Shown here: one piece after another, positions 1 through 36,139 of the stretch | Position numbering within the stretch: position 1 is the stretch's first letter | Layout: the number at the start of each line of letters is the position of its first letter | From: Octopus sinensis | Taxonomy: Eukaryota | NCBI RefSeq assembly: GCF_006345805.1 | Contig: NW_021835220.1 | Coordinates: 1 to 44,389, forward strand | Length of the DNA: 44,389 nucleotides | Reading direction: 5' to 3' | Notes under the pieces: model-generated | Told to the model about the DNA's origin: nothing | The model's database searches: none | Seen by the model: the letters and a program-made list of their open reading frames with translations, nothing else | Position numbers and translations under genes: made by a program

Positions 1-36
1 TCTTTGATGGTTGAAATGTTGTTGTTCCAAAGATCT
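1..36 (-). CDS. LRR exon 11, truncated by window edge: DLWNNNISTIK...
   Basis: Same acceptor flank at 37-60; open frame to position 1. Confidence 0.85.
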
Positions 37-1708
37 CTATAGCAGTAAAGAAAGAGTAAAATAGATTATATGGAAAATATTTGTGATACAACATCAAACA
101 CTGTGACTTGAGAATGAAAGGAAGAAAAAGAAGAAAGATAACGAAGAAGAAAAGGAAGAAGAAGAAGGAAGAGGAGGAGGCGAAGAAGAATTAGAAGAAG
201 AAAGGAGAAGAGGTAGAAGAAAAAGAAGAGCAAGAAGGAATAGGAGGAAAAAGGAGGAGGAGGCTGATAAAAGGGAAGAAGATGTAGGAGAAAAAGTAAA
301 AGAAGGAGAAGGAGGGGGAGGAGGAGGAGGAAGAGAATAACAAGAAGAAGAAGATAAGAATAAGAAAGACGAGGAAGAGGAGGAGGAGAAGTAGATGAAG
401 AAGTAGAAAGAAGAAAGGAGAAGAAGAAGAAGAAGGAGAAGAAGAAGAAGAAGAAGAAGAAGAAGAAGACGAAAAAGAAGGAGGATGAGGAGGGGGAGGG
501 GAAGAAGAAGAATTGCAAGAAGAAGGAAGGGAAGAACAGAAGAAGAAGACGTAGAAGAAGTTGAAGCAGGAAAAAGAAGAAGAAGATGAAGAAGAAGAAG
601 GAGGAGGAGGAGGAGAAATAGACAACAAAACAGAAGTTAAGAAGGAAAAAAGGAGGAGAGAGAAGATGTGTAAAGAAGAAGAAGAAGAAGAAGAAGGAAG
701 AGGAGGAAAAAGGAGGAGGATTAGGAGTAGAAGGGAATAATAAGTAGGAGAAGATGAAAAAGAAAAGAAGAAGTGAAGAGTGAGGAAGGAGGAGGATGAG
801 AATTACAAAAAGGAATTATAAAAAGAAAAAGAGGGTAGGAGGAGAAGTAGATGTAGAAGTAGAAAGAAGAAGAAGAATATAAGAAGAAAAAAAAGAAATA
901 GAAGAATGAGAAGAAGAAAAGAAAAAGAAGGAGGAGGAGGAAAAGAAGAAGAAGAATTAGAAGAAGAAGCAGAAGAAGAAGAAAAGGAGCAGGAGTGGAA
1001 GGGAGGAGGAGAATTACAAGAAGAAAAAGGAGGAGGAGGGGCGGAGAGGATTGGGTAGAAAAAAGAAGATGAAAAAAAGAAGTAGAAGAAGGAAGAGGAA
1101 AAAGGAGGAGGAAGATGATGATAGGGAAAAAGTAGGTGTAGAAGAAAAAGAATAAGAATAAGAAGAAGGAGGAGGAGGAGGAAGGGTAGATGAAGAAGTT
1201 GAAAGTAGAAGAAGAAGAGGAAGAAGCAGAAGAGAAGAAGAAGAAGAAGAAGAAGAAGACGGAGAAGAAAATGAAGAAAAAAGAAAAAGGAGCAGGAGAG
1301 GAGGGGGAGGAAGAGAATTACAAGAAGAAATAGGAGGAGGAGGGGCGGAGTGGAGGCGGAAGAGAATTTAAAGAAGAAAATGAAGAATAATAATAAGAAA
1401 AAAATTAAAAGAGGAAGGAGGAGGAGGACCAGGAGGAGGAGGACCAGGAGGAGGACCAGGAGGAGGAGGAGCAGGAGGAGGAGGAGAGAAAAAAAAGAAA
1501 AAGAAGAGAGAGAAGAGAAGAAGAATAAAAAAAGAAAGAAGAAGAGAAGAAGAAGATAAGTAAGAAAGAAGAAATAAATAAGAAGAATAAGAAGAAGAGG
1601 AGAGGCATAATACTAATACAAAAAGATGAAAAAGGCAGAGAAGGAGAAGTAGAATAAGAAAAAGAACAAAAAGAAGAAGGAGAAGAAGAAGAAGAAGAAG
1701 GAGAAGAA

Positions 1709-1740
<32 letters not shown>

Positions 1741-4700
1741 CATTGAAAATCATGGTGTTTAAGATGAAACTGGAAATATTTTCGAAATATCAGGAAATAA
1801 TTCAAGGATAGAAAGAAAAATTTTGGGCGAGAAGACATGGCAGAAAAATCAGGGAATTTACGGAATCAGAAATCAACATATTCAAATGCACTCATACGCA
1901 TTCTTATATTCATAGTATCAACGACGGAATGCGGTATGCACACTCACATCACACATATTCCCATTCAACCTTGTGGAAATATGGTGAGAGAGATTATTTA
2001 TTTCATATCGCTTCATTGTCACAAGAATATTAGAAAACACACGCTCACAAGAAATATATCAGCACTTTAATTGTATCAGGCCAAATATTCCAGCTTACAA
2101 GTACAGTAAGTATTTCAGGTTTACAGAAAGAATGTATGTGACTATATTTTTTGAATATATATTTTCCGCTTCCACTTCAGTTGCTCTATATATAAAGGAA
2201 CATTATATTTTTCCTATTATTTTAATTTCTCTCTCAAATTCTCTCTCTTTCTTTCACATTGTCTCGCTCTCTCATATTCTCTTTGTATCTTCCTAAATCG
2301 TGTTCATTCTACAAATTCGAATTGATTTTGTTTGGCGCAGTCTGAAATTTTTTACATTTGTGAGCTGATATATCAGCATCAATTATTACTTTCGGAAAAT
2401 AGTATCAAGAAACTGAACGAACTTACAATGTCTTTAAATTCGAAAGCGCCGTGAATGCTCCTTCTTTGATGGTTGCTATGTTGTTGGAACCAAGATATCT
2501 ATAGCAGTAAAGAAAGAGTAACATAGATTTATGGAAAATATTTGTGATACGACATCAAACACTGTGACTTCAGAATGAAAGGAAGAAAAGGCAGAAAGAT
2601 AACGAAGAAGAAAAGGAAGAAGAAGGAGGAGGAGGTGAAGAAGAAAAAGAAAAAGAAGAAGAAGAATAAGTAGAAGAAGAAAGAGAAAAAGGAGAAGAAA
2701 AGAAGGGGAGAAGTAATTAGGGAAAAAGGAGGAGGAGGATGGTAAAAGGGAAGAAGTAGTAGCGAAAAAGTAAAAGAAAGAAGGAGAGGAGAGGAGGATG
2801 ACTATAGATGAAGAAGTAGAAAGAAGAAGAAGAAGAAGGAGAGGAGAAAAGGAGAGAGGAGAGATTGGAAGAATAATTAGGAGAGATGAAAAAGAAGAAG
2901 AAGATGAAGGAGGAGAGGGATGAGAATAACAAAAAGAAGAATATAAGAAGAAGAAAGAGGAGTAGGAGGAGAAGTAAATGTTGAAGTAGAAAGTAGTAGA
3001 AGAAGAAGAAGGAGAAGAAGTATAAGAAGAAAAAAGAGTAGAAAAATGAGAAGAAGAAAAGAAAAAGGAGGAGGAGGAAAAGAAGAAGAAGAAGAAGACG
3101 CAGAAGAAGAAGAAAAAGAAGCGGGAGAGGAGGGGGAGGAGGAGAATTACAAGAAAAAAAGGAGGAGGAGGGGCGGAGAGGATAGGGAAGAAAGAAAGAA
3201 GAGGAAAAAAGAAGTAGAAGGAAGAGGAAAAGGAGGAGGAAGCAATGAAGGGGAAAAGTAGTGTAGAAGAAAATAACAAGAATAAAAGATAAGGAGGAAG
3301 GAAAGAGGAGGAGGAGTAGTTGAAAAAATTGAAAGTAGAAGAGGATGTAGGAGAAGAAGAAGAAGAAGAAATATGTAGAAGCGAGAGAAGAAGAAACAAA
3401 ATAAGGAGAAGGAGGAGAAGAAGAAGAAGAATAAGAAGACGAAGAAGGAGAAGAAGAAGAAGAAGAAGAAGAAAAACGAGCAGGAGAGGAGGGGAGGTGG
3501 AGAATTACAAGAAGAAAAATGAGGAGGAGGGGCGGAGTGGAGCGGGAGAGAATTTAAAGAAGAAAATGAAGAATAAGAAGAAGAAAGAAATTAGAAGAGG
3601 AAGAAGGAGTAGGAGGAGTAGAAAGAAGAAAAAAGAAAAAGAAGAGAAGCGAGAAAGAAGAAGAAAAAAGAAAAGAAGAAAAAAGAGAAGAAAAAGAAGG
3701 AGGAGAAGGAGCAGCAGGAGGAGAGGAAGAAGAAGGAGAAGAAGAAGAAGTAGAAGAAGAAGAAGGAGAAGGAGAAGGAGAAGAAGAAGAAGTTGAAGAA
3801 GAAGAAGAAGAAGAGGGAGGAGAAGAAGAAGAAGGAGACGAAGAAGATACATTGAAAATTATGGCGTTCAAGATGAAACTGAAAATGTTCTTAAAATAAC
3901 AGGAAATAATTCAAGGATAGAAAGAAATATTTTGGGCGAGAAAACCTGGCAGAAAATTCAGGGAATATGCGGAATCAGAAATCAACATATTCAAATGCAC
4001 TCATACACATTCTTATATTCATAGTATCAACGACGGAATGCGGTATGCACACTCACATCACACATATTCCCACTCACCCTTGTGGACATATGGTGAGAGA
4101 GATTATTTATTTCATATCGTTTCATTGTCACAAGAATATTAGAAAACACACGCTCACATGAAATATATCAGCTGTTTAATTGTATCAGGCCAAATATCCC
4201 ATCTTACAAGTACAGTAGTATTTCAGGTTTACAGATAGAATGTATGTGACTATATTATTCGAATATATATTTTCCGCTTCCACTTCAGTTGCTCTATTAC
4301 ATAAATAACGTGAAGTGAATGACAAAATTCGAAGTTGAATGATAATATCGAAACACGAAGAGAATATTGAAATAAAAATGGAGGAGGATGCAAAATATAA
4401 AATAAAGGAATAATATAGTCACATTTCACACAGAACTACACTTATATATGAACATACACATATACTTCAGCTAAAAATATTTGATGCAAACATGTAAACT
4501 CACAAACGTTACCATTTCTAATACAAATTCATATCAAAATCATTGAAATTGGGGAACAAAAATGAGTTATTGAGATGCGAATTGAAACAAAGCAACTACA
4601 ATAAAGGAACATTATATTTTTCCTATTATTTCACTTTCACTCTCAAATTCTCTCTCTTTCTTTCACATTGTCTCGCTCTCTCATATTCTCTTTGTATCTT

Positions 4701-7700
4701 CCTATGTCGTGTTCATTCTACAAATTCGAATTGATTTTGTTTGGCGCAGTCTGAAATTTTTACATTGTGAGCTGATATATCAGCATCAATTATTACTTTC
4801 GGAAAAGTATCAAGAAACTGAACGAACTTACAATGTCTTTAAATTCGAAAGCGCCGTGAATGCTCCTTCTTTGATGGTTGCTATGTTGTTGGAACCAAGA
4901 TTTCTATAGCAGTAAAGAAAGAGTAAAATAGATTATATTGAAAATATTTCTGATACGACATCAAACGCTGTGACTTCAGAATGAAAGGAAGAAAAGGCAG
5001 AAAGATAACGAAGAAGAAAAGGAAGAAGAAGAAGGAGGAGGAGGTGAAGAAGAGGAACGAAAAGAAGAAGAAGAAGAATTAGTAGAAGAAGAAGAGGAGG
5101 AGGAGGAGGATGACAAGTAGATGAAAAGTAGAAGAGAATAAAAGAAGAAGGAAGAGGAGGAAAAAGGAGGAGGAGGAGAATGATTGGAAGAATAATTAGG
5201 AGAAGATGAAAAAGAAGAAGAAGATGAAGGAGAGGAGGATGAGAATAACAAAAAGAAGGATATAAGAAGAAGAAAGAGTAGGAGGAGAATAAATGTTAAG
5301 TAAAAGTAGTAGAAGAAGAAGAAGAAGAAGAGGAGAAGAAATATAAGAAGAAAAAAAATAGTAAAAAATGAAGAAGAAAAGAAAAAGGAGGAGGAGGAAA
5401 AGAAGAAAAGAAGAACGCAGAAGAAACGCAGAAGAAGAAGACAAATAAGCGGGAGGGAGGGGGAGGAGGAAATTACAAGAAAAAAAGGAGGAGGAGGAGG
5501 CGGAGAGGATTGGGAAGAAAGAAAGAAGAGGAAAAAAGAAGTAGAAGAAGGAAGAGGAAAAAGGAGAGAAGCAATGAAGGGGAAAAGTAGGAGTAGAAGA
5601 AAATAACAATAATAAGAAGAAGAAGAGGAAAGGAGGAGAGAGTAGTTGAAAAAATTGAAAGTAGAGGGATGTAGGAGAGAAGAAGAAGAAGAAATATGTA
5701 GAAGCGAGAGAAGAAACAAAATAAGGAGAAGGAGGAGAAGAAAAGAATAATAGAAGACTAAGAAGAGAAGAAGAAGAAGAAGAATAAGAAAAACGAGCAT
5801 GATAGGAGGGGAGGTGGAGAATTACAAGAAGAAAATGATGAGGAGGGGCGGAGTGGAGCGTGAGAGAATTTAAAGAAGAAAATGAAGAATAAGAATAAGA
5901 AATAAATTAGATAGGAAGAAGGAGTAGGAGGAGTAGGAAGAAAAAAAAAGGAAAAGAAGAGAAGAAGAAGAAGTAGAAGAAGAAGGAAAAGAAGAAAAAG
6001 AAGAGAAGAAAAAGAAGGAGGAGAAGGAGCAGCAGGAGGAGAGGAAGAAGAAGGAGAAGAAGAAGAAGTAGAAGAAGAAGAAGGAGAAGGAGAAGGAGAA
6101 GAAGAAGAAGTTGAAGAAGAAGAAGAAAAGAGGGGAGAAGAAGAAGAAGAGACGAAGAAGATACATTGAAAATTATGGCGTTCAAGATGAAACTGAAAAT
6201 GTTCTTAAAATAACAGGAAATAATTCAAGGATAGAAAGAAATATTTTGGGCGAGAAAACCTGGCAGAAAATTCAGGGAATATGCGGAATCAGAAATCAAC
6301 ATATTCAAATGCACTCATACACATTCTTATATTCATAGTATCAACGACGGAATGCGGTATGCACACTCACATCACACATATTCCCACTCACCCTTGTGGA
6401 CATATGGTGAGAGAGATTATTTATTTCATATCGTTTCATTGTCACAAGAATATTAGAAAACACACGCTCACATGAAATATATCAGCTGTTTAATTGTATC
6501 AGGCCAAATATCCCATCTTACAAGTACAGTAAGTATTTCAGGTTTACAGATAGAATGTATGTGACTATATTATTCGAATATATATTTTCCGCTTCCACTT
6601 CAGTTGCTCTATTACATAAATAACGTGAAGTGAATGACAAAATTCGAAGTTGAATGATAATATCGAAACACGAAGGAGAATATTGAAATAAGAAATGGAG
6701 GAGGATGCAAAATATAAAATAAAGGAATAATATAGTCACATTTCACACACAGAACTACACTTATATATGAACATACACATATACTTCAGCTAAAAATATT
6801 TGATGCAAACATGTAAACTCACACAACGTTACCATTTCTAATACAAATTCATATCAAAACAATCATTGAATTGGGGAACAAAAATGAGTTATTGAGATGC
6901 GAATTGAAACAAAGCAACTACAATAAAGGAACATTATATTTTTCCTATTATTTCACTTTCACTCTCTCAAATTCTCTCTCTTTCTTTCACATTGTCTCGC
7001 TCTCTCATATTCTCTTTGTATCTTCCTAGTCGTGTTCATTCTACAAATTCGAATTGATTTTTTTTGGCGCAGTCCTGTCAATGTTTTTACATTTGTGAGC
7101 TGATATATCAGCATCAATTATTACTTTCGGAAAATAGTATCAAGAAACTGAACGAACTTACAATGTCTTTAAATTCGAAAGCGCCGTGAATGCTCCTTCT
7201 TTGATGGTTGCTATGTTGTTGGAACCAAGATTTCTATAGCAGTAAAGAAAGAGTAAAATAGATTATATTGAAAATATTTCTGATACGACATCAAACGCTG
7301 TGACTTCAGAATGAAAGGAAGAAAAGGCAGAAAGATAACGAAGAAGAAAAGGAAGAAGAAGAAGGAGGAGGAGGTGAAGAAGAGGAACGAAAAGAAGAAG
7401 AAGAAGAATTAGTAGAAGAAGAAGGAGGAGGAGGAGGAGGATGACAAGTAGATGAAGAAGTAGAAAGAAGAAGAAGAAGAAGGAAGAGGAGGAAAAAGGA
7501 GGAGGAGGAGAATGATGGGGAAGAATAAGTAGGAGAAGATGAAAAAGAAGAAGAAGATGAAGGAGGAGGAGGATGAGAATAACAAAAAGAAGAATATAAG
7601 AAGAAGAAAGAGGAGTAGGAGGAGAAGTAAATGTTGAAGTAGAAAGTAGTAGAAGAAGAAGAAGAAGAAGGAGAAGAAGTATAAGAAGAAAAAAAGAGTA

Positions 7701-9782
7701 GAAAAATGAGAAGAAGAAAAGAAAAAGGAGGAGGAGGAAAAGAAGAAGAAGAAGACGCAGAAGAAGACGCAGAAGAAGAAGAAAAAGAAGCGGGAGAGGA
7801 GGGGGAGGAGGAGAATTACAAGAAAAAAAGGAGGAGGAGGGGCGGAGAGGATTGGGAAGAAAGAAAGAAGAGGAAAAAAGAAGTAGAAGAAGGAAGAGGA
7901 AAAAGGAGAGGAAGCAATGAAGGGGAAAAGTAGGAGTAGAAGAAAAAGAAGAAGAATAAGAAGAAGAAGGAGGAGGAGAAGGAGGAGGAGGAGTAGTTGA
8001 AAAAATTGAAAGTAGAAGAGGATGTAGGAGAAGAAGAAGAAGAAGAAATATGTAGAAGCGAGAGAAGAAGAAACAAAATAAGGAGAAGGGAGAAAAGAAG
8101 AAGAAGAATAAGAAGACGAAGAAGAAGAAGAAGAAGAAGAAGAAGAAGAAGAAGAACAAAAACGAGAAGGAGAGGAGGGGAGGAGGAGAATTACAAGAAG
8201 AAAAATGAGGAGGAGGGGCGGAGTGGAGGGGGAGAGAATTTAAAGAAGAAAATGAAGAATAAGAAGAAGAAAGAAATTAGAAGAGGAAGAAGGAGTAGGA
8301 GGAGTAGAAGAAGAAAAAAAAGAAAAGAAGAGAAGAAGAAGAAGAAGAAGAAGGAAAAGAAGAAAAAGAAGAGAAGAAAGAGAAGGAGGTGAAGGAGCAG
8401 CAGGAGGAGAGGAAGAGAAGAAGAAGAAGAAGTAGAAGAAGAATGAGAAGGAGAAGGAGAAGAAGAGAAGTAGAAGAAGAAGAAGAAGAAGAAGAAAAGG
8501 GAGGAGAAGAAGAAGAAGAAGACGAAGAAGATACATTGAAAATTATGGCGTTCAAGATGAAACTGAAAATGTTCTTAAAATATCAGGAAATAATTCAAGG
8601 AGAGAACGAAAAATTTTGGGCGAGGAGACATGGCTGAAAAATCAGGGAATATACGGAATCAGAAATCAACATATTCAAATGCACTCATACACATTCTTAT
8701 ATTCATAGTATCAACGACGGAATGCGGTATGAACACTCACATCACACATATTCCCACTCACCTTTGTGGACATATGGTGAGAGAGATTATTTATTTCATA
8801 TCGCTTCATTGTCACAAGAATATTAGAAAACACACGCTCACAAGAAATATATCAGCTGTTTAATTGTATCAGGCCAAATATCCCAGCTTACAAGTACAGT
8901 AAGTATTTCAGGTTTACAGATAGAATGTATGTGACTATATTATTCGAATATATATTTTCCGCTTCCACTTCAGTTGCTCTATTACATAAATAACGTGAAG
9001 TGAATGACAAAATTCGAAGTTGAATGATAATATCGAAACACGAAGGAGAATATTGAAAGAAGAAATGGAGGAGGATGCAAAATATAAAATAAAGGAATAA
9101 TATAGTCACATTTCACACAGAACTACACTTATATATGAACATACACATATACTTCAGCTAAAAATATTTGATGCAAACATGTAAACTCACAAACGTTACC
9201 ATTTCTAATACAAATTCATATCAAAATCATTGAAATTGGGGAACAAAAATGAGTTATTGAGATGCGAATTGAAACAAAGCAACTACAATAAAGGAACATT
9301 ATATTTTTCCTATTATTTCACTTTCACTCTCAAATTCTCTCTCTTTCTTTCACATTGTCTCGCTCTCTCATATTCTCTTTGTATCTTCCTAAATCGTGTT
9401 CATTCTACAAATTCGAATTGATTTTGTTTGGCGCAGTCTGAAATTTTTTACATTTGTGAGCTGATATATCAGCATCAATTATTACTTTCGGAAAATAGTA
9501 TCAAGAAACTGAACGAACTTACAATGTCTTTAAATTCGAAAGCGCCGTGAATGCTCCTTCTTTGATGGTTGCTATGTTGTTGGAACCAAGATTTCTATAG
9601 CAGTAAAGAAAGAGTAAAATAGATTATATTGAAAATATTTCTGATACGACATCAAACGCTGTGACTTCAGAATGAAAGGAAGAAAAGGCAGAAAGATAAC
9701 GAAGAAGAAAAGGAAGAAGAAGAAAGAGGAGGAGGTGAAGAAGAAAAAGAAAAAGAAGAAGAAGAATAAGTAGAAGAAGAAA

Positions 9783-9815
<33 letters not shown>

Positions 9816-18800: not shown

Positions 18801-21800
18801 GAAACACGAAGGAGAATATTGAAATAAGAAATGGAGGAGGATGCAAAATATAAAATAAAGGAATAATATAGTCACATTTCACACAGAACTACACTTATAT
18901 ATGAACATACACATATACTTCAGCTAAAAATATTTGATGCAAACATGTAAACTCACAAACGTTACTATTTCTAATACAAATTCATATCAAAATCATTGAA
19001 ATTTGGGGAACAAAAATGAGTTATTAAGATGCGAATTGAAACAAAGCAACTATAATAAAGGAACATTATATTCTTCCTGTTATTTCACTTTCTCTCTCAA
19101 ATTCTCTCTCTTTCTTTCACATTGTCTCGCTCTCTCATATTCTCTTTGTATATTCCTAAATCGTGTTCATTCTACAAATTTGAATTAATTTTGTTTAGTT
19201 CAGTCTGAAATATTATACATTTGTGAGCTTATATATCAGCATCAATTATTACTTTCGGAAAATAGTATCAAGAAACTGAACGAACTTACAATGTCTTTAA
19301 ATTTGAAAGCCCCGTAAATGCACCTTCTGTGATGGTTGAAATGTTGTTCTCGTTCAGATTTCTATAGCAGTAAAGAAAGAGTAAAATAGATTATATGGAA
19401 AATATTTGTGATACAACATCAAACACTGTGACTTGAGAATGAAAGGAAGAAAAAGAAGAAAGATAACGAAGAAGAAAAGGAAGAAGAAGAAGGAAGAGGA
19501 GGAGGCGAAGAAGAATTAGAAGAAGAAAGGAGAAGAGGTAGAAGAAAAAGAAGAGCAAGAAGGAATAGGAGGAAAAAGGAGGAGGAGGCTGATAAAAGGG
19601 AAGAAGATGTAGGAGAAAAAGTAAAAGAAGAAGAAGGAGGGGGAGGAGGAGGAGGAAGAGAATAACAAGAAGAAGAAGATAAGAATAAGAAAGACGAGGA
19701 AGAGGAGGAGGAGAAGTAGAAAGAAGAAAGGAGAAGAAGAAGAAGGAGAAGAAGAGGAGAAGAAGAAGAAGAAGAAGAAAAAGAAGGAGGATAGGGAGGG
19801 GGAGGGGAAGAAGAAGAATTGCAAGAAGAAGGAAGGGAAGAACAAGAAGAAGAAGACGTAGAAGAAGTTGAAGCAGGAAAATGAAGAAGATAAGAAGAAG
19901 GAGGAGGAGGAGGAGGAGGAGAAAGAGAATAACAAAAACAGAAGTTAAGAAGGAGAAGGAGGAGGAGGCGGAGATGTAGAAGAAGAAGAAGAAGAAGAAG
20001 AAGAAGGAAGAGGAGGAAAAAGGAGGAGGAGTAGGAGTATGAAGGGGAGAATAAGTAGGAGAAGATGAAAAAGAAGAAGAAGATGAAGGAGGAGGAGGAG
20101 GAGGAGGATGAGAATAACAAAAAGAAGAATATAAGAAGAAGAAAGAGGGGTAGGAGGAGAAGTAGATAAAGAAGTAGAAAGAAGAAGAAGAATATAAGAA
20201 GAAAAAAAAGAAATAGAAGAATGAGAAGAAGAAAAGAAAAAGAAGGAGGAGGAGGAAAAGAAGAAGAAGAATTAGAAGAAGAAGCAGAAGAAGAAAAAAG
20301 GAGCAGGAATGGAAGGGAGGAGGAGAATTAGAAGAAGAAAGAGGAGGAGGAGGGGCGGAGAGGATTGGGTAGAAAAAAAGAAGATGAAAAAAAGAAGTAG
20401 AAGAAGGAAGAGGAAAAAGGAGGAGGAAGATGATGATAGGGAAAAAGTAGGTGTAGAAGAAAAAGAATAAGAATAAGAATAAGAAGAAGGAGGAGGAGGA
20501 GGAAGGGTAGATGAAGAAGTTGAAAGTAGAAGAAGAAGAAGAAGAAGAAGACGAAGAAGAAGAAGACGAAGAAGAAAAAGAAGAAAAAAGAAAAAGGAGC
20601 AGGAGAGGAGGGGGAGGAAGAGAATTACAAGAAGAAATAGGAGGAGGAGGGGCGGAGTGGAGGGGGAAGAGAATTTAAAGAAGAAAATGAAGAATAATAA
20701 TAAGAAAAATATTAGAAGAGGAAGGAGGAGGAGGACCAGGAGGAGGAGGAGGACCAGGAGGAGGAGGAGGACCAGGAGGAGGAGGAGAAATAGAAGAAAA
20801 AGAAAAGAAGAGAAGAAGAAGAAGAAGAAGAAGATGAAGTAGAAGTGGAAGAAAGAAAAGAAGAAGAAGAAGAAGAAGGAGGAGGAGGCAGAAGACGAAA
20901 TGACAAAAAGATGATGAAAAAGGCAGAGAAGGAGAAGTAGAATAAGAAAAAGAACAAAGAAGAAAAAGAAAAGAAGAAGAAGAAGAAGAAGAAGAAGAAG
21001 AAGAAGAAGAAGAAGAAGAAGACGAAGAAGAAGACACATTGAAAATCATGGTGTTTAAGATGAAACTGAAAATATTTTCGAAATATCAGGAAATAATTCA
21101 AGGATAGAAAGAAAAATTTTGGGCGGAAAGACATGGCTGAAAAATCAGGGAATATACGGAATCAGAAATCAACATATTCAATTGCACTCATACGCATTCT
21201 TATATTCATAGTATAAACGACGGAATGCGGTATGCACACTTACATCACACATATTCCCACTCACCCTTGTGGAAATATGGTGAGAGAGATTATTTATTTC
21301 ATATCGCTTCAATGTCACAAGAATATTAGAAAACACACGCTTACAAGAAATATATCAGCAGTTTAATTGTATCAGGCGAAATATCCCAGCTTACAAGTAC
21401 AGTAAGTATTTCAGGTTTACAGATAGAATGTATGTTACTATATTATTCGAATATATATTTTCCGCTTCCACTTCAGTTGCTCTATTACATAAATAACGTG
21501 AAGTGAATGACAAAATTCGAATTTGAATGATAATATCGAAACACGAAGGAGAATATTGAAATAAGAAATGGAGGAGGATGCAAAATATAAAATAAGGGAA
21601 TAATATAGTCACATTTCACACAGAACTACACTTATATATGAACATACACATATACTTCAGCTAAAAATATTTGATGCAAACATGTAAACTCACAAACGTT
21701 ACCATTTCTAATACAAATTCATATCAAAATCATTGAAATTTGGGGAATAAAAATGATTTATTTAGATGCGAAGTGAATCAAAGCAACTACAATAAAGGAA

Positions 21801-24800
21801 CATTATATTTTTCCCATTATTTCACTTTCTCCCCAAATTCTCTCTCTTTCTTTCACATTGTCTCAATCTCTCATATTCTCTTTGTATCTTCCTAAATCGT
21901 GTTCATTCTACAAATTTGAATTGATTTTGTTTGGTGCAGTCTGAAATTTTATACATTTGTGAGCTTATATATCAGCATCAATTATTACTTTCGGAAAATA
22001 GTATCAAGAAACTGAACGAACTTACAATACGTTTAAATTTGAAAGCCCCGTGATGGTTGCAATGTTGTTCCCTCCAAGATCTCTATAGCAGTAAAGAAAG
22101 AGTAAAATAGATTATATGGAAAATATTTGTGATACAACATCAAACACTGTGACTTGAGAATGAAAGGAAGAAAAAGAAGAAAGATAACGAAGAAGAAAAG
22201 GAAGAAGAAGAAGGAAGAGGAGGAGGCGAAGAAGAATTAGAAGAAGAAAGGAGAAGAGGTAGAAGAAAAAGAAGAGCAAGAAGGAATAGAAGGAAAAAGG
22301 AGGAGGAGGCTGATAAAAGGGAAGAAGATGAAGGAGAAAAAGTAAAAGAAGGAGAAGGAGGGGGTGGAGGAGGAAGAGAATAACAAGAAGAAGAAGATAA
22401 GAATAAGAAAGACGAGGAAGAGGAGGAGGAGAAGTAGATGAAGAAGTAGAAAGAAGAAAGGAGGAGAAAAAGAAGAAGGAGAAGAAGAAGAAGAAGATGA
22501 AGAAGAAGACGAAAAAGAAGGAGGATGAGGAGGGGGAGGGGAAGAAGAAGAATTGCAAGAAGAAGGAAGGGAAGAACAAGAAGAAGAAGACGTAGAAGAA
22601 GTTGAAGCAGGAAAAAGAAGAAGATGAAGAAGAAGAAGGAGGAGGAGGAGGAGGAGGAGAAGGAGAAAGAGAATAACAAAAACAGAAGTTAAGAAGGAGA
22701 AGGAGGAGGAGGAGAAGATGTAGAAGAAGAAGAAGAAGAAGAAGGAAGAGGAGGAGTAGGAGTAAGAAGGGGAGAATAAGTAGGAGAAGATGAAAAAGAA
22801 GAAGAAGATGAAGGAGGAGGAGGAGGAGGATGAGAATAACAAAAAGAAGAATATAAGAAGAAAGAGGGGTAGGAGGAGAAGTAGATGTAGAAGTAGAAAG
22901 AAGAAGAATATAAGAAGAAAAAAAAGAAATAGAAGAATGAGAAGAAGAAAAGAAAAAGAAGGAGGAGGAGGAAAAGAAGAAGAAGAATTAGAAGAAGAAG
23001 CAGAAGAAGAAGAAAAGGAGCAGGAGTGGAAGGGAGGAGGAGAATTACAAGAAGAAAAAGGAGGAGGAGGGGCGGAGAGGATTGGGTAGAAAAAAGAAGA
23101 TGAAAAAAAGAAGTAGAAGAAGGAAGAGGAAAAAGGAGGAGGAAGAGGATGATAGGGAAAAAGTAGGTGTAGAAGAAAAAGAATAAGAATAAGAATAAGA
23201 AGAAGGAGGAGGAGGAGGAAGGGTAGATGAAGAAGTTGAAAGTAGAAGAAGAAGAAGAAGAGGAAGAAGAAGAAGACGAAGAAGAAGAAGACGAGAAGAG
23301 AAGAAGAAGAAGAAGACGAAGAAGAAAAAGAAGAAAAAAGAAAATGGAGCAGGAGAGGAGGGGAGGAAGAGAATTACAAGAAGAAATAGTAGGAGGGGCG
23401 GAGTGGAGGGGGAAGAGAATTTAAAGAAGAAAATGAAGAATAATAAGAAGAAAAAAATTAGAAGAGGAAGGAGGAGGAGGACCAGGAGGAGGAGGAGCAG
23501 GATGAGGAGGAGGAGAAATAGAAGAAAAAGAAAAGAAGAGAAGAAGAAGAAGAAGAAGATGAAATAGAAGTGGAAGGAAGAAAGAAGAAAGAAGAAGAAG
23601 AAGAAGAAGAAGGAGGAGGAGGCAGAAGACGAAATGACAAAAAGATGATGAAAAAGGCAGAGAAGGAGAAGTAGAATAAGAAAAAGAACAAAAGAAGAAG
23701 GAGAAGAAGAAGAAGAAGAAGAAGAAGAAGAAGAAGAAGAAGAAGAAGAAGAAGAAGACGAAGAAGAAGACACATTGAAAATCATGGTGTTTAAGATGAA
23801 ACTGAAAATATTTTCGAAATATCAGGAAATAATTCAAGGATAGAATGAAAAATTTTGGGCGAGAAGACATGGCAGAAAAATCAGGGAATATACGGAATCA
23901 GAAATCAACATATTCAATTGCACTCATACGCATTCTTATATTCATAGTATCAACGACGGAATGCGGTATGCACACTCACATCACACATATTCCCACTCAC
24001 CCTTGGGGAAATATGGTGAGAGAGATTATTTATTTCATATCGCTTCATTGTCACAAGAATATTAGAAAACACACGCTTACAAGAAATATATCAGCAGTTT
24101 AATTGTATCAGGCCAAATATTCCAGCTTACAAGTACAGTAAGTATTTCAGGTTTACAGATAGAATGTATGTGACTATATTTTTTGAATATATATTTTCCG
24201 CTTCCACTTCAGTTGCTCTATTACATAAATAACGTGAAGTGAATGACAAAATTCGAAGTTGTGTGATAATATCGAAACACGAAGGAGAATATTGAAATAA
24301 GAAATGGAGGAGGATGTAAAATATAAAATAAAGGAATAATATAGTCACATTTCACACAGAACTACACTTATATATGAACACACACATATACTTCAGCTAA
24401 AAATATTTGATGCAAACATGTAAACTCACAAACGTTACCATTTCTAATACAAATTCATATCAAAATCATTGAAATTTGGGGAACAAAAATGAGTTATTGA
24501 GATGCGAATTGAAACAAAGCAACTACAATAAAGGAACATTATATTTTTCCTATTATTTCATTTTCTCTCTCAAATTCTCTCTCTTTCTTTCACATTGTCT
24601 CGCTCTCTCATATTCTCTTTGTATATTCCTAAATCGTGTTCATTCTACAAATTTGAATTAATTTTGTTTAGTTCAGTCTGAAATTTTATACATTTGTGAG
24701 CTTATATATCAGCATCAATTATTACTTTCGGAAAATAGTATCAAGAAACTGAACGAACTTACAATGTCTTTAAATTCGAAAGCCCCGTGAATGCTCCTTC

Positions 24801-27800
24801 TTTGATGGTTGAAATGTTGTTCCCTCGCAGATCTCTATAGCAGTAAAGAAAGAGTAAAATAGATTATTTGGAAAGTATTTGTGATACGATATCAAACACT
24901 GTGACTTCAGAATGAAAGGAAGAAAAAGAAGAAAGATAACGAAGAAGAAAAAGAAGAAGAAGAAGAAGAAGAAGAAGAAGAAGAAGAAGAAGAAGAAGAA
25001 GAAGAAGAAGAAGAAGAAGAAGAAGAAGAAGAAGAAGCAGAAGGAGAAGAAGAAGAAGCAGGAGGAGAAGAATATCTTAACGTGGCAGCCGTTTCATGTT
25101 TATTTCCTACTTGACTTGCACAACCTCGAGTATCCGCTTCGCCTCTCTATGTACCAACACACACATCCACACACATACACGCACATGTATGCACATATAA
25201 GCACATACACACATATACACTCAGAAATATACACACATATGTATATCTACCTCTGGGTGCGAGTATGTGTGTGAACCTCGTCCCCGTAGTGGTGTCCTTT
25301 TATCTGTCGATACAGTTTATTATCGAATCTAAAGGTGTTGTCTTCTAGTTCCCGGCGTGTGTCTTTGGAAATGCGTTTTGAAGCGTTCGTCCATCCGTCC
25401 GCTATGTTTTTCTACCCAGTGTTTGATTGCTCCCAGGCCCAAAGTGTGATGTATTTGTACAAAGATTAGTCAAATCTTTTAAGTATAGTACGTTCTGGGA
25501 CAGTGGGTGGAATGTGTTTGATGAAATCCATATCGTCTCGGGTATAGCTGGGCATTAATGGGCACAACGGTTTGAGGAGTATATCCAAAAGATGGCTCAG
25601 TTGTTGTGTTGGGGCTCAAGGTCCAGCAACTGTTGGTCTCAATTTGATGTCAGTAGGTCTTAGTATTTTTATATGCTGATCCTTGCATTTTGGAGCATTC
25701 GCAGATCTTGGGTGATCCATAGAAATTACTCTCTTTCATTACAGAGCTGCATAAATAATCTTTCTCTTTATCTGTGAACGAACGTTGGTATTCATTTATC
25801 TTAATTTTGGGTGTATTTATTATTACTTTCTCCGCGTGTCTTGGTTCTTTCTTGTAGCAGGATTAGTCTGTTTCCAATATTTTATCTTTATAGTAGTCTT
25901 GGTCCGTGACTGCTATCACCCTTCCCCAATCGGTTTCGTTTAGGATGATTAAATTGTCAATTTGCAGTTTGTAAGGCTTTCTTTTCGTCTTCACGAAGGC
26001 TCTGTTTGCATTTTCGTATATTTTATTATATAAGATATAAAACAGATTTAAATCACCACGTAAAGTATGAATGAAAAACACACATGCATGTAAAATATGA
26101 GAAAAGAATGGATGTTCAAAATATTTGTGATTTGAATTAGATTTACAAAGCCTTCGTTGCAACATCAGTTTTCAGTGGAAGATATTTTTATCATCTCAGA
26201 AGTCAGCTTTATTTAGAAATATCTTGTTTCTGTCCAATGAGCATTCTATTTGTTATTACACTTTGCTGTCAAAAGTAATTTATCTTTGCAAAAGTAAACT
26301 CCTCTCCTTTGCATAATTAATGCATAAAAGTTCTTCACAAAAATAAATAAACCCCCAAAACTTCAAGACTGAAATAATAGACTAGGAAGGAAAACATAAC
26401 AGAAATAGAAAGGGATTTATTAATAGAATTGGTGATGGTAGAGTGGGGAAACCCTGATATAATTTTGAGTTATGTGCTACAAAGGAGAACAACCTTACAT
26501 GGTGATTTAACTGGTTAAGGGTGTTATTTAAAAAAGGGATGTGGCAACATACATTGCCTTAGGTTTTTTCGTCTTTTTTTAGCCCTTTGCTCCTTACTCT
26601 TGCTGTATTAAACCTCAGTTTGTTCCCATTATTAGCCATCTATGCTAAATCCTTCATCCCCTAAATAGCATCCCTGTTAATCATTCCTGTAAAGGTTAAC
26701 CTGCAACAGCTCAAACGGAATATTAATGACTAACAGTATCGCCCGGCATTGCTCAGGTTTGTAAGGGAAATAACTATAAAGCATTTTTAGAGAGTTATAG
26801 CCAAAAAATAGCAAAAAAATGGAAAAAAAATGATGGTAAATTTTTTTGAGAGTTAAAAAAGGTGGAGTTGCGTCCCCTAGACGGTCTGTGGTTTGGGTTT
26901 CTGATTCTCGACCCCATGTCGAATTTATCGATTTTTTTCAGAACTGGGGGAACTTTTCAAAATTTTCGCTGCGTTAGTTTTGAATTATGACATTGGGCTA
27001 TGTGTGTGTCAAGTTTCATCAGAATCGGTTGAAAGCCGTGGTCAGAGTGAGGGTACGAGAAAACAGACACACAGAAAACGCACAGACAAACTGCCGTTTA
27101 TATAGAGAGAGATATCTGTCTCACAAATATTGGAGATCTTGCAGGGGTTAAAAAACTTGTCTGATCCTTTCTCCAAAATCGCTAAAATAAAAAGTGTGGA
27201 ATTTTAACTCAGGTCACAGACAACTGGACAATATACTGCAAGGTGTCTTATTCGAGGTCCTCATAGTTGCATTTGTTCATTGAACAGTTATGGTTCTTTA
27301 TTGATCTCTGAAATGAATGACCCAAGGTTGACCTTGGCGGGATTTGACGTCAGATTGCCGTGTGTCAGAACGCAATGTATTCTACTAGACGGTCAAATGA
27401 TTTGTGCCAAACCTCGCTCAAGTTATGAACGATGAAAATATCTAACTTATTAAACAGAACTTCAACTTTACTATTCAACATCTTGAGTTATACGAGATTT
27501 AGGAATTCCATTATTGACACTTTTCTCTTTATTTTACATTAGGATTTCTCATTTTGTCAAAACGTTCCAAATGTTTTGAGAAATAGATCTGATCGAATGA
27601 ATTGATCCACTTTAGTATTAGAATATTTGATTAAAACTGAAAGTTTAAGGTGATTAATGCAATGATGCAAGCCAATTAACTGGAAATAATCACCTGGAAG
27701 AGCAGTGTGTTGCAACAGAGTATTTGTTATGATTGCATGTATCAAATAATTTCTCTTTTTTATTCTATTCCATTTCTTGAGACGTTAAATTTTAATAATT

Positions 27801-28930
27801 TACTTAAAAATTGCGTAAGATTTCAGGTGAACGGGGATACATCAATCAGCCGAAACTTCAATTAAGCTTGCATAATTTTGTAATAAGGTTTATTGTGTTC
27901 ATGATAGGGTAAATTTTACTGATGACATTCTATCAAAAATAAATTCCTCATAATTTGTTAAAACAACACTATTTTGATTTCTTCACTTAGGTATTTTAAG
28001 AATTTGGCAATTTAAGCGGATCTCGTCATTATCTGCTGTTTAATTCATCTGTTTCATTTTTAATTATAAAAATAATCATTTCTTCTATAGGAACAAACCT
28101 GAAATTTTGGGAAAGGGACAAGTCCTTTACATTGATCTCAGAGATAAATTGCTATTTATTTTACCGACTCCAAAAGAATGAAAAACAAAGTCAACCTCGA
28201 CAGAATTTAAAATCGAAACGTAAAGACGAACGAAATACCGCTCAACATTTTGTCTGGCGTGCACAACGATTCTGATAGCTCGCTGCATATTCTATTATAA
28301 AATTAACACAAACAATAATTAACAATTATTCTGTGACACGATCAACTGATATTATATCATATTACTGTAATAATAAGCAACAATTCAACTAATTAATGAT
28401 ATAACTATGTGGAATACACGTTTTCTTAGCACTAAAGTTTTTACACTGTCCGTTCATTGAATATACCGTAAGATTTGATAAGTTCAGACAAATGACATCA
28501 AAGTCAGATACTAGTCATATCCAATCTCTGTGTATGCGATGTTATATATTATAAATTCAATATGGTAAGAAACAGTTTATTTGACTTCACAGCAGGTAAC
28601 TTATCGATTTGTTTTACTCTAACATAAGATTGTGCTTAAAGCTGTGAGATAAACAGCATAAGCGATTAGCTGAGAACATAATCAATGAGAATTTAAAATA
28701 TTGGATGTGGAAAATACGTAGAAAGTGTCAAATACTTACAAATATTCAACATTCGTCGGAATTGGTTGTGGAATTGATAGTAAATTGCGACGTGCACAAT
28801 ATATTCTCGTTGTAAGTGAATTGCAATTACATGTGTTGCATATATCTGAATCAGCTTGAGTCTCCAAAAACAATATCGTACACAGTATCAACACAAGAGA
28901 CCGTCTATATGATACTACGTGGTGAAACAT
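1..28930 (-). CDS. Multi-exon LRR ectodomain protein gene (signal peptide + LRRNT + at least 11 LRRs), 3' end beyond left edge; join of 28740-28930, 24763-24834, 22026-22082, 19290-19361, 16537-16608, 14448-14519, 11934-12005, 9523-9594, 7162-7233, 4832-4903, 2427-2498, 1-36
   Basis: All internal exons have canonical TAG acceptors and GTAAGT donors, all introns are phase 2 (TT|A = Leu), and there are no stops. Manual splice gives MFHHVVSYRRSLVLILCTILFLETQADSDICNTCNCNSLTTRIYCARRNLLSIPQPIPTNVEYL|DLRGNNISTIKEGAFTGLSNLKTL|DLGGNNIATITGLSNLNVL|NLNENNISTITEGAFTGLSNLKTL|YLYENNIATITEGTFTGLSNLNFL|YLGSNNIATIKEGAFTALSNLKTL|YLYENNIATITEGTFTGLSNLNYL|(NLGSNNIATIKEGAFTALSNLKTL)x3|YLGSNNIATIKEGAFTALSNLKTL|DLWNNNISTIK..., 310 aa in window. 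Matches the typical 24-aa extracellular LRR consensus LxxLxLxxNxIxxIxxxxFxxL. No orthologue recognised. Confidence 0.9.
2427..2498 (-). CDS. LRR exon 10, 72 nt: YLGSNNIATIKEGAFTALSNLKTL
   Basis: Canonical splice sites; identical to exon 5. Confidence 0.92.
4832..4903 (-). CDS. LRR exon 9, 72 nt: NLGSNNIATIKEGAFTALSNLKTL
   Basis: Canonical splice sites; identical to exons 7 and 8. Confidence 0.9.
7162..7233 (-). CDS. LRR exon 8, 72 nt: NLGSNNIATIKEGAFTALSNLKTL
   Basis: Canonical splice sites; identical to exons 7 and 9. Confidence 0.9.
9523..9594 (-). CDS. LRR exon 7, 72 nt: NLGSNNIATIKEGAFTALSNLKTL
   Basis: Canonical splice sites; identical to exons 8 and 9. Confidence 0.9.
11934..12005 (-). 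CDS. LRR exon 6, 72 nt: YLYENNIATITEGTFTGLSNLNYL
   Basis: Canonical splice sites; differs from exon 4 by one nucleotide (TAC vs TTC, non-synonymous). Confidence 0.92.
14448..14519 (-). CDS. LRR exon 5, 72 nt: YLGSNNIATIKEGAFTALSNLKTL
   Basis: Canonical splice sites; identical to 2427-2498. Confidence 0.92.
16537..16608 (-). CDS. LRR exon 4, 72 nt: YLYENNIATITEGTFTGLSNLNFL
   Basis: Canonical splice sites, open frame, LRR consensus. Confidence 0.92.
19290..19361 (-). CDS. LRR exon 3, 72 nt: NLNENNISTITEGAFTGLSNLKTL
   Basis: Canonical splice sites, open frame, LRR consensus. Confidence 0.92.
22026..22082 (-). CDS. LRR exon 2, 57 nt (15-nt in-frame deletion): DLGGNNIATITGLSNLNVL
   Basis: Same splice flanks as the other cassettes; codons 11-15 absent; frame kept. 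Confidence 0.85.
24763..24834 (-). CDS. LRR exon 1, 72 nt: DLRGNNISTIKEGAFTGLSNLKTL
   Basis: ctttactgctatag acceptor, gtaagttcg donor. Joins exon 1 to give IPTNVEYLDLRGNNI, the classic LRRNT-LRR1 junction. Confidence 0.93.
24912..25070 (+). repeat. Short, nearly perfect (GAA)n microsatellite marking the right edge of the array
   Basis: Direct reading; homology to the array units stops inside it. Confidence 0.9.
25262..25965 (-). mobile_element. Degenerate Penelope-like reverse transcriptase fragment
   Basis: Minus-strand pieces DWGRVIAVTDQDYYKDKIL, NFYGSPKI, KLRPTVAGP*APTQQLSHLLDILLKPLCP, DNTFRFDNKLYRQIKG resemble PLE RT motifs (DKGxxxVIMDxxDY, FYGLPKIHK, LRPIVAGPxAPT). Contains stops and frameshifts. 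Confidence 0.8.
26730..27113 (-). mobile_element. Helitron/Helentron-type non-autonomous element (HINE/DINE-1-like)
   Basis: Minus strand starts ATCTCTCTCTATATAAAC followed by a (TG)-rich stretch and ends in an imperfect hairpin cctgagcaatgccggg plus a CTAG-like terminus (gttagt). Confidence 0.55.
28121..28285 (-). mobile_element. SINE family 2 copy in the first coding intron of the LRR gene
   Basis: Reverse-complement similarity to 43143-43310. Confidence 0.7.
28740..28930 (-). CDS. First coding exon: signal peptide + LRR N-terminal cap (exon spans 28740-28950)
   Basis: Hydrophobic leader LVLILCTILFL with a plausible TQA/DS cleavage, CxxCxC-x8-C cap followed by LLSIPQPIP. Acceptor ttttcttcttttacag at 28951, donor GTAAGT at 28739, phase 2. 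Confidence 0.9.
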
Positions 28931-29485
28931 ATTGCCAGGCGTAGATTTATCTGTAAAAGAAGAAAATAGGAAATGTCAGAGATTTCAATGTTATTAACTT
29001 CAAATTGCAGATTCTCTGAAGGAACTAAAATTCACCCCTGTTCCACATGACAAATATATTTTTGTTTTCATGATTGGATATTTAAAGCTAAAAAATTAAA
29101 TTTCGATAAATTAGTGTGAAGAAATTTATAAAAATATTATAGCTTTAACGCGTAATAATATCAAAGAAAACACCAAACTCACACACACAAACACAAACGC
29201 ACTCCTACACACATCTGTAACCATACTCGGAGGGGGGTCTAATATATATATATATACAAAACTAGCGAACCATGAGTTTCGTAGACCCTAAATACGCAGT
29301 GGTTGTAAACCCGGTTGGGTCGTTAAATCCGATGGGACCCCACAAGCAACTGTATTGTATCAAAGGATTTTTCCTGTACCCCAGTTTTAGAAGCGTTCAT
29401 ACAAAGTTTTTCCTTAAATAAACTATCATGATTTCATTTTACTTACTTTTTTTTTACTGAAAACAAGAATAAAGCATGAACGTAA

Positions 29486-30426: not shown

Positions 30427-30559
30427 CTGCGGTGGCCAGAATTCGCCCCTTAAAGGCGAATTTTGAGTTTTAAAAACTACAAATTTATATTTTATAAAGA
30501 AAAAGTTCAGTCTGGCTTCCCAAATCGAGGCAAGTAAAGGTTCTTACATCATCCGTTTT

Positions 30560-31410: not shown

Positions 31411-31474
31411 ACTTTCCCAAATGCATCAATAAATTAACATTGATATTTTTTCACCGTTGTTGCAATCATCTGAA

Positions 31475-32567: not shown

Positions 32568-32577
32568 TTTATTTCCA

Positions 32578-32803
32578 TGTCAAACGGGAATGAGGGGTGC
32601 GGGGGTGGAATGGCAGTGTTGTCCCAGAGACGCCTGGATCTCAACACAAAGATTATCTTCCTGGACCCAGAAGGTAAGTTGGTGGTCCTGGACGTCGTGA
32701 ACAGTAGTAACGGAGGTGTCCTAAGTCTGGTGGCTGTTTATGCCTCGACACGTTCCGGATAGCTGAACATCTTCAGACGTCTGGAGGTTTTCCTTGTAGT
32801 GTC
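32578..32803 (+). mobile_element. APE endonuclease fragment of a Tx1/L1-like LINE
   Basis: GGGMAVLSQRRLDLNTKIIFLDPEGKLVVLDVV...LSLVAVYAST matches the GGVAIL...DxEGRxxxxD...LVxVYAP pattern. Confidence 0.7.
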
Positions 32804-32806
32804 TAG

Positions 32807-36135: not shown

Positions 36136-36139
36136 TCCA

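Follow-up and report, generated by a model that had tools for sequence, protein, structure and literature searches.

A tandem array of single-repeat LRR exons in Octopus sinensis, probably the 5′ part of an Octopus-specific LRR-ectodomain gene

Contig NW_021835220.1 of Octopus sinensis (RefSeq assembly GCF_006345805.1) was analysed over positions 1 to 44,389, and this whole stretch of 44,389 nt is called the window. Its minus strand carries an exon for a putative signal peptide (SP) and LRRNT cap, followed by ten complete exons that each encode a single leucine-rich repeat (LRR) and by an eleventh that is cut at the window edge. We consider it very probable that positions 1-39611 (minus strand) hold the 5′ portion of a gene that is encoded in the germline, is spliced conventionally and belongs to an Octopus-specific LRR-ectodomain family. 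A scan for AG, 72 nt and GT with an LRR-like translation gave nine matches, all of them on the minus strand, and alignment of the segments between the purine tracts of the region added a 57-nt tenth exon and the eleventh exon, which has 36 nt inside the window. A preliminary description of this DNA had proposed AG/GT-bounded LRR exons within a purine-rich stretch, and the array is indeed real; the length of 72 nt given for all eleven exons applies to nine of them, one being 57 nt long and the last edge-cut. The gene span first proposed, 1-28950, contains the array and the SP exon, and the gene reaches further upstream, to a probable 5′ exon. The loci used for comparison, designated L001, L002 and so on, were obtained via the longest isoforms P0135, P0140, P0142 and P0168; exact-product look-ups with P0001, P0003, P0004, P0007 and P0177 had no match. 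The exons and introns of the gene are as follows, in the order of transcription; the SP/LRRNT exon is called exon 1 below, and the LRR exons are numbered separately as cassette exons.

39578-39611, minus strand: probable 5′ coding exon; ATG at 39611, MSFNKLMRHLD plus 1 nt, donor GTAAGG at 39577-39572
28951-39577, minus strand: inferred first intron, 10.6 kb, rich in transposon debris; from colinearity with L004 and L001
28740-28950, minus strand: putative SP and LRRNT exon; ttttacag acceptor before 28950, ATG at 28930, gtaagt donor after 28740
24835-28739, minus strand: intron, 3.9 kb; includes the 207-nt GAA tract at 24888-25094
24763-24834, minus strand: LRR cassette exon 1 (DLRGNNISTIKEGAFTGLSNLKT); pattern scan and splicing
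22026-22082, minus strand: LRR cassette exon 2, 57 nt (DLGGNNIATITGLSNLNV); segment alignment and splicing
19290-19361, minus strand: LRR cassette exon 3 (NLNENNISTITEGAFTGLSNLKT); pattern scan and splicing
16537-16608, minus strand: LRR cassette exon 4 (YLYENNIATITEGTFTGLSNLNF); pattern scan and splicing
14448-14519, minus strand: LRR cassette exon 5 (YLGSNNIATIKEGAFTALSNLKT), short-tract cassette type; pattern scan and splicing
11934-12005, minus strand: LRR cassette exon 6 (YLYENNIATITEGTFTGLSNLNY); pattern scan and splicing
9523-9594, minus strand: LRR cassette exon 7 (NLGSNNIATIKEGAFTALSNLKT); pattern scan and splicing
7162-7233, minus strand: LRR cassette exon 8, same sequence as cassette exon 7; pattern scan and splicing
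4832-4903, minus strand: LRR cassette exon 9, same sequence as cassette exon 7; pattern scan and splicing
2427-2498, minus strand: LRR cassette exon 10 (YLGSNNIATIKEGAFTALSNLKT); pattern scan and splicing
1-36, minus strand: LRR cassette exon 11, cut at the window edge (DLWNNNISTIK...); segment alignment and splicing
90-23803, minus strand: ten cassette introns, each with donor, unique segment, pyrimidine tract and acceptor
90-1779, 2556-3874, 4963-6188, 7293-8563 and 9653-10968, plus strand: purine tracts 1-5
12059-13792, 14578-15988, 16667-18331, 19415-21067 and 22136-23803, plus strand: purine tracts 6-10

All ten complete cassette exons share the acceptor ctttactgctatag, which ends in ctatag, and the donor gtaagttcgt. 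Every cassette exon is of phase 1-1, all cassettes lie in one orientation, and the exons are spaced 2089-2753 nt apart. The splice sites are intact (20 of 20) and the exons contain no stops. Spliced onto exon 1, they give a stop-free product of 932 nt and 310 aa, the length first reported, and its eleven tandem repeats fit the 24-residue pattern LxxLxLxxNxIxxIxxxxFxxLxxL. The fourth Leu of the LxxLxLxxN strand motif is composed of TT, the last two bases of an exon, and the first base of the next exon. In cassette exon 2, 15 nt are deleted in frame, at the cost of five residues, among them the conserved Phe. The open reading frame (ORF) listing of the window misses all LRR exons, as had been remarked: made at a minimum of 60 aa, it cannot show exons of 24 codons.

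Exon 1 reads as a signal-peptide-like segment with an LRRNT-type cysteine cap. Its product is MFHHVVSYRRSLVLILCTILFLETQA, then DSDICNTCNCNSLTTRIYCARRNLLSIPQPIPTNVEY, and its 3′ end provides two nucleotides of a Leu codon. The cap motif after MFHHVVSYRRSLVLILCTILFLETQA is CNTCNC...C; on the relative P0001, Pfam LRRNT matches weakly and below the cut-off (E = 0.0097). Octopus family proteins match the exon-1 peptide at 87-95% identity, and nearly all paralogues seen have the same first 26 residues, which form the signal-peptide segment. Directly after this segment, the LRRNT varies at a few positions among paralogues (TRIYCARRN, TRINCINRN, AIISCINRN). Several relatives start in an upstream exon that is spliced to the counterpart of the 28950 acceptor (...NKSTPGNMFHH). 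The probable 5′ exon of the window reads ATG TCA TTT AAT AAA TTG ATG CGT CAT CTT GAT A/GTAAGG (the slash marking the splice site), matches the annotated 5′ exon of O. vulgaris P0011/P0142 at 9 of 12 residues, and has a phase that suits the acceptor at 28950 (A/AT, Asn). It coincides with the annotated gene start at the O. vulgaris locus L004, with which the window is colinear up to about 43.5 kb. The inferred first intron (28951-39577) is colinear with the upstream regions of L004 and L001 at 90-99.7% identity, except for a 2.3-kb insertion at 31499-33829.

Eleven GAA-rich purine tracts, ten of them 1226-1734 nt and the eleventh 207 nt long, together occupy about 15.2 kb of the first 25.1 kb of the plus strand; the mixed segments of 0.68-1.1 kb between them can be aligned with one another almost base for base. 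In transcript sense, a cassette intron begins with the donor and a unique segment of at most 959 nt, which are followed by a pyrimidine tract, 53-59 nt of ordinary sequence and the acceptor. The tract is 1.2-1.7 kb long, about 90% pyrimidine and UUC-rich, with 126-200 UCUU motifs; the 207-nt tract in the intron after exon 1 has its end 53 nt from the first LRR acceptor. The tracts had been taken for a purine satellite. They match GAA at a level of about 67% (Tandem Repeats Finder), that is, imperfectly, and fall into two subfamilies, long (97-99% identical) and short (95-98%), with 90-92% identity between the two and 81% in a shuffled control. Independent microsatellite expansion or slippage is rejected by the 95-99% identity within subfamilies, and each tract is a stable imperfect sequence that was copied with its cassette. 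The short tract type always directly precedes an xLGSNNIATIKEGAFTALSNLKT exon. The high similarity of the introns, which had been pointed out, holds for both of their parts, with 0.5-7% divergence in the unique part and the identities just given for the tracts.

The same layout is present at other loci. At L001 and L002 a pyrimidine tract of 0.4-2.2 kb precedes every LRR cassette exon and ends 51-71 nt upstream of it, also for a second cassette type, NKISRIEKEMFQGLHNLEK. Among the window, L001 and L002, identity of the 959-nt unique intron is 94-99%. A dispersed transposon was considered for this segment and rejected, as it occurs there only directly after type-A LRR exons. Long pyrimidine (TTC) tracts are absent from L003 (CM046630.1:796126-846331), the sole O. 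bimaculoides locus examined, where 72-nt phase-1 LRR exons are present; the tracts may be confined to the O. vulgaris/sinensis lineage or to certain types of cassette. Within the window, two cassette introns have a deletion of about 300 nt in common and a third has one of about 410 nt (1780-2555, 13793-14577, 15989-16666), and cassette types alternate as YLYE, xLGS, YLYE, xLGS. The shared deletion and this alternation suggest a two-cassette higher-order duplication.

AlphaFold2 predicts for the 310-aa product (27-sequence alignment; mean predicted local distance difference test, pLDDT, 92.1; predicted template-modelling score 0.88) a curved LRR solenoid with a parallel beta-sheet on its concave face. 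The model has one beta-strand per 24 residues, and 19 residues across the short repeat of cassette exon 2. The top Foldseek matches are the ectodomains of LRIG1, LGR4/LGR5, netrin-G ligand-3 (NGL-3), chondroadherin, the Nogo receptor and LINGO-1, with E = 1e-17 to 1e-13 and template-modelling scores up to 0.84 for LRIG1 and LGR4/5.

A protein search with the 310-aa product, proposed in the preliminary description, returned strong matches exclusively from Octopus (top E = 2.6e-108), the top eleven being from O. sinensis or O. vulgaris; beyond them we found generic LRR similarity only (30-45% identity), with hagfish VLR-A among the distant matches. Loci of O. vulgaris and O. sinensis match the flanking DNA at 96-99.7% identity, and sequences specific to the family, both of the type-A cassette and of exon 1, are present in the window. 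The idea of an LRR receptor-type gene in an octopod is therefore well founded. We found no identical copy of the window elsewhere; L001, L002 and L004, which match it at 90-99.7% identity, are paralogues or orthologues.

Fuller relatives continue past the array with a terminal LRR (xNPIEKYEDGAFLFLPSI), an LRRCT (NNLMKCGCHLPAFVKY...), a Cys-rich module of about 90 residues and an alpha/beta module, and some carry in addition an HRM-like segment, GAIN/GPS (CSCDHLTSFA) and a class-B seven-transmembrane (7TM) domain. Precomputed Pfam matches on relatives include GPS (PF01825) and/or 7tm_2 (PF00002) in P0161, P0162 and P0158. In a separate Pfam comparison of relatives, LRR_8, LRR_4 and LRR_1 are strong, GAIN and HRM weak. 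P0159 joins LRRs, GPS and TM1 in one model. At L002, on an O. vulgaris chromosome, the LRR array, LRRCT, Cys-rich and GAIN exons follow in order on one strand, and the GAIN exons extend past the annotated gene end (69751-75868). A search with the C-terminal part again retrieved Octopus proteins only. Attempts to assign the Cys-rich module to Ly6/uPAR and the alpha/beta module to SEA, labels suggested by motifs only, failed, with no Pfam match at E ≤ 0.01; in the AlphaFold2 model of P0151 the former has a pLDDT below 50, and the latter reaches 76-94 with no PDB match better than E = 6e-3.

The gene is a member of an Octopus-only family that is not new: RefSeq and ENA have annotated members from three species (O. 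vulgaris, O. sinensis and O. bimaculoides). The suggestion of a hidden, unannotated gene is therefore not supported, although the models are inconsistent and no database protein has this exon chain. Annotated names are ADGRG6-like, slit homolog-like, LRRC15-like and chondroadherin-like, and many models are truncated. Slit, the NCBI name of several relatives, was rejected as an identity. Slit has four LRR domains, each with LRRNT and LRRCT, then EGF repeats, laminin-G and a C-terminal cystine knot; the relatives, unlike Slit, have a single LRRNT and a single LRRCT, and Pfam gives LRR families on them, with no EGF or laminin-G. Our literature search for 72-bp LRR exons in Slit yielded nothing usable. 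In the O. vulgaris annotation (P0004, P0183), one model is an LRR plus ankyrin chimera called MIB2-like, and L002 bears two mutually incompatible models, P0007 and P0140.

The family fits the octopus-specific, co-localised expansion of adhesion G protein-coupled receptors (GPCRs) described as ‘group 3’ by Ritschard et al. 2019 (PMC6408891). That expansion is LRR-bearing, has been reported to be under positive selection, and is expressed in the axial nerve cord, suckers and skin (PMC6408891). The window shares with it the exon-1 peptide (87-95% identical), the cassette types and splice sites, the restriction to the genus and the clustering; it differs in an unusually long and homogeneous array, in which 11 or more cassettes belong to one type. 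The gene adds a further member to a lineage-specific receptor expansion that has been recorded before, and its existence is not new. An earlier description of the cassette and intron architecture was not found in the literature searched.

We compared exons and introns within the array and found that the exons are the more divergent part. Average divergence within the window is 4.1% (0.5-7%) for the unique intron parts and 14.6% (up to 25%) for the exons. The variation is concentrated at exon positions 2, 7-13 and 67-70, which make up the codons of the five x in LxxLxLxxN; the coding sequence of every hypervariable strand therefore spans a splice junction. Nucleotide diversity by site class, for 23 type-A cassettes from three loci, was:

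Five hypervariable codons: 0.47
Scaffold codon positions 1+2: 0.066
Scaffold third positions: 0.145
Flanking intron: 0.060

The five concave-face codons are thus about eight times as diverse as the introns, and the value of the scaffold third positions was reached by only 0.15% of random intron-site sets. By the Nei-Gojobori method, the proportions of nonsynonymous and synonymous differences in the scaffold are pN = 0.054 and pS = 0.19 (pN/pS about 0.28), which indicates purifying selection on real coding sequence; pN is 0.46 in the hypervariable codons. Exon 1 behaves in the same manner. In the comparison with L004, identity is 99.7% over the kilobase upstream and 98.5% over that downstream, as against 92.7% for exon 1 and 89.4% for its LRRNT part; differences affect 14 of 191 sites in exon 1 and 18 of 1993 in the flanks (Fisher test, P = 1e-7), with both synonymous (0.070) and nonsynonymous (0.075) rates raised. 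The LRRNT cap may be part of the variable recognition surface. Coding patches several-fold more divergent than the surrounding non-coding DNA are unusual and worth following up.

The similarity of the introns had been read as evidence that the ectodomain was built recently by whole-cassette duplication. This applies to the five short-tract (xLGS) cassettes, with exons 0-1.4% and introns 1.2-5.6% divergent; cassettes with identical exons still differ by 1.2-2.8% in their introns. It does not apply to the array as a whole. Between cassette types, exons are up to 25% apart while introns are 2-5% apart and synonymous sites are elevated, so intron similarity does not date the exons. Synonymous sites that exceed introns, together with exon variants that recur across loci (DLRGNNISTIKEGAFTGLSNLK is common to the window and L002), point to concerted evolution of the non-coding parts with retention of exon diversity. 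Gene conversion and unequal crossing-over would homogenise the introns while selection retains the diversity of the exons, as far as these sequence comparisons indicate.

Cassette number differs among loci whose flanks are 96-99.7% identical:

L004: 2 cassettes
L002: 8 cassettes
L001: 11-12 cassettes
Window: at least 11 cassettes

With this range and with variability on the predicted binding face, the modular, variable ectodomain first envisaged is borne out. Annotated isoforms vary in the same units. L001 has 13 RefSeq isoforms of 409, 385, 361 and 337 aa, which differ by multiples of 24 aa and, mapped to the genomic exons, draw on the first six cassettes in varying combinations. Isoforms of 525, 501 and 477 aa are annotated for a further O. 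sinensis gene. Of the two L002 models, P0007 uses two cassettes and skips six, and P0140 joins seven, with junctions that are exactly the splice boundaries predicted in the window. The family isoform models show such exons joined in the annotators' transcript evidence, and combinatorial cassette inclusion, suggested by paralogue isoforms that differ by whole cassettes, is plausible but unproven.

Overall, we suggest the following scheme for the proposed family gene. In its fullest form the protein would comprise a signal peptide, LRRNT, a variable number of 24-residue LRRs, LRRCT, Cys-rich and alpha/beta modules, HRM, GAIN/GPS and 7TM. Each LRR would be a symmetric phase 1-1 exon within a cassette of 2.1-2.75 kb, and the long near-identical introns would allow unequal crossing-over and gene conversion to add, delete and homogenise cassettes with the frame kept, which would explain the range from 2 to at least 11 cassettes among near-identical loci. 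Diversity would be kept or generated at the five x positions of LxxLxLxxN that form the concave beta-sheet. Since the strand is encoded across the exon junction, gain, loss or skipping of an exon would also create new strand combinations. Exon symmetry, identical splice sites and the paralogue isoforms suggest that single cassettes may be alternatively included. Judging from the family-level literature, the protein probably serves in recognition at the cell surface or of ligands and would feed into adhesion-GPCR signalling in nervous tissue, suckers or skin.

Several points weigh against this scheme. The closest relative, L004, has no GAIN or 7TM exon in the 74 kb fetched. The 3′ end, from LRRCT onward, lies outside the window, so the gene is assigned to the GPCRs by homology only; tblastn with family proteins detected none of the LRRCT, Cys-rich, HRM, GAIN and 7TM exons at any position of the window, nor a further family gene at 29-44 kb. 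Because some relatives (for example P0001, 525 aa) end without a transmembrane (TM) segment, a secreted product is possible. No protein in a collection of 5.8 billion sequences has this exon chain or the exact exon 1, which leaves the window locus without transcript evidence; the best protein matches reach 63-71% identity across the array and 92% across exon 1, and a search with exon 1 only gave short O. sinensis models with no exact match. The RefSeq isoforms are annotation models and may reflect ambiguous mapping of short reads. One cassette exon, of 57 nt, has no conserved Phe, three exons are identical in sequence, and the copy number of a 2.4-kb tandem array is a feature that assemblers typically get wrong.

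An extension of the scheme that we regard as possible but doubtful makes the array a generator of diversity at the RNA level, with cells including different cassette subsets and so producing ectodomains of differing length and strands. The UUC-rich tract 53-59 nt before each exon would offer UCUU motifs as potential PTB-type binding sites. Such an array would be an LRR counterpart of the Dscam and protocadherin isoform codes, with conversion keeping introns uniform and selection keeping exons different at the DNA level. Protocadherins are also expanded in octopus. Dscam1 and the clustered protocadherins are an analogy only: there too, tandem similar exons encode recognition modules, and the octopus paralogue isoforms use different subsets. 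However, we have no evidence of mutually exclusive or promoter choice in the octopus array, and its cassettes are additive repeats of one solenoid, whereas Dscam1 and protocadherin exons are alternative versions of one domain.

That the locus encodes an LRR-only protein, secreted or anchored in the membrane, in which the family's 5′ module is used alone and no adhesion GPCR is made, is in our view unlikely. The RefSeq models P0001 (525 aa) and P0135 (409 aa) end after the Cys-rich or alpha/beta modules with no TM segment, and the absence of GAIN and 7TM exons from the fetched part of L004, whose upstream kilobase is almost identical to that of the window, is in line with it. However, many family models are visibly truncated or split, the L002 GAIN exons run beyond the annotated gene end, and in P0159 the LRRs are linked to GPS and TM1 within one model. 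Some known receptor families are comparable in structure. ADGRA2/ADGRA3 (GPR124/GPR125) resemble the octopus family in an N-terminal LRR region with LRRCT, HRM, GAIN/GPS and a class-B 7TM domain; they have few fixed LRRs and an Ig domain, as opposed to the Cys-rich and alpha/beta modules and the variable LRR number of the octopus family. LGR4/5/6 and the glycoprotein-hormone receptors are, together with LRIG1, the closest solved folds. In these LRR-GPCRs, too, the ectodomain LRRs are encoded by roughly 72-nt phase-1 exons, with SP and LRRNT in exon 1. An LGR-type LRR GPCR was nevertheless rejected, as the TM-bearing relatives have 7tm_2 and GPS and the likeness is limited to fold and exon layout. 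LGRs belong to the rhodopsin class (7tm_1) and are old, conserved single-copy genes, whereas the array is young and variable.

It is improbable that the array is a recently amplified pseudo-array, decaying or not expressed and open in frame through its youth only, or that an assembly artefact accounts for its copy number. Three exons have the same sequence and five are nearly alike, the deletion in cassette exon 2 takes out a core residue, searches of protein collections found no matching transcript-derived protein, and the O. vulgaris model P0007 leaves out six cassettes at L002. But all 20 splice sites are intact, the exons are free of stops and the scaffold pN/pS is about 0.28; the copies are imperfect, their introns being 1.2-2.8% apart even where the exons are identical; and the same architecture appears in independent assemblies of two species, with seven such cassettes joined in P0140.

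The fast-evolving immune or allorecognition receptor of the preliminary description, akin to VLRs (variable lymphocyte receptors) or brown-algal ROCO LRR genes, has just as small a chance of being correct. Hypervariability confined to concave-face positions and the flux in copy number suit it, as does the formal likeness to Ectocarpus LRR-ROCO genes, in which each LRR is a single 72-nt, 24-aa exon subject to shuffling and duplication, with positive selection on binding-face residues (Zambounis et al. 2012, PMC3341825). Nothing ties the octopus family to immunity, however: the published expression is neural, sucker and skin, as cited above, and Pfam finds no TIR, death-domain or NACHT module in the relatives. 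The Ectocarpus genes share with the octopus array the one-exon-per-LRR layout, exon shuffling and duplication, and binding-face selection. They encode unrelated cytoplasmic ROC-COR GTPases, in contrast to the extracellular SP/LRRNT ectodomain of the octopus gene, lack kb-scale pyrimidine tracts, and belong to a different kingdom-level lineage. VLRs resemble the octopus gene in an LRRNT followed by variable 24-residue LRR modules and in concave-face diversity, but they arise by somatic insertion of flanking cassettes devoid of splice sites into an incomplete germline gene, whereas the octopus cassettes are ordinary exons with ordinary splice sites in a complete germline frame. As far as sequence tells, a VLR-like mechanism is excluded. 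A mutational process targeted to the exons is the least probable of all, since the excess over the flanks at synonymous and nonsynonymous sites alike and the contiguous patches of difference (exon positions 7-13 and 67-70) are also expected if conversion homogenises non-coding DNA while selection rejects converted exons, and variants shared between loci, such as that in the window and L002, argue for old, exchanged diversity that was retained.

The interesting, open part of this system, on the family-gene reading, is the combination of uniform introns, giant pyrimidine tracts, hypervariable strands that span junctions, flux in cassette number and a possible choice of cassettes in RNA. We put forward the hypothesis that octopus adhesion GPCRs diversify their recognition surface via genomic cassette turnover and RNA cassette choice. 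As gene models of the family are fragmented, chimeric and misleadingly named, gene counts and selection analyses built on them are likely to be off.

The remainder of the window contains transposon debris and simple repeats. The 2.3-kb insertion relative to L004 (31499-33829) holds a mariner-type transposase remnant at 32033-32350 (plus strand), with a Pfam Transposase_1 match of E = 5e-5, just below the cut-off. Overlapping ORFs at 34158-34680 (plus strand) resemble a hAT-type transposase by eye only, with no Pfam match. Two copies of another ORF, at 30023-30340 and 43762-44115 (both minus strand), end in ...MEKLSKYKDLEIEVTRxxNLKTETIPIIVxALGMIKxYSDKYITKTPG; the ORF looks like the tail of a retroelement ORF, has no Pfam match and also occurs in L001 and L002. 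A dispersed repeat of about 300 nt lies at 36261-36560, 36903-37307 and 38266-38619 (plus strand) and also at 41198-41404 and 42347-42503. Its ORF motif, ...LPHSHAYACVFMYKSIYRMKRTNK...SPTNDRQEQ..., is found in L002 too, and the window copies are flanked by (CA)n and (AT)n microsatellites. In the intron after exon 1, a 380-nt insertion relative to L001 (26729-27111) is probably a small mobile element; a copy that is 94.6% identical lies elsewhere in L002 (8022-8399). The ordinary microsatellites are:

36780-36901: (CA)61
38095-38241: (AT)74
43519-43664: (ATT)49
44181-44258: (TTA)26

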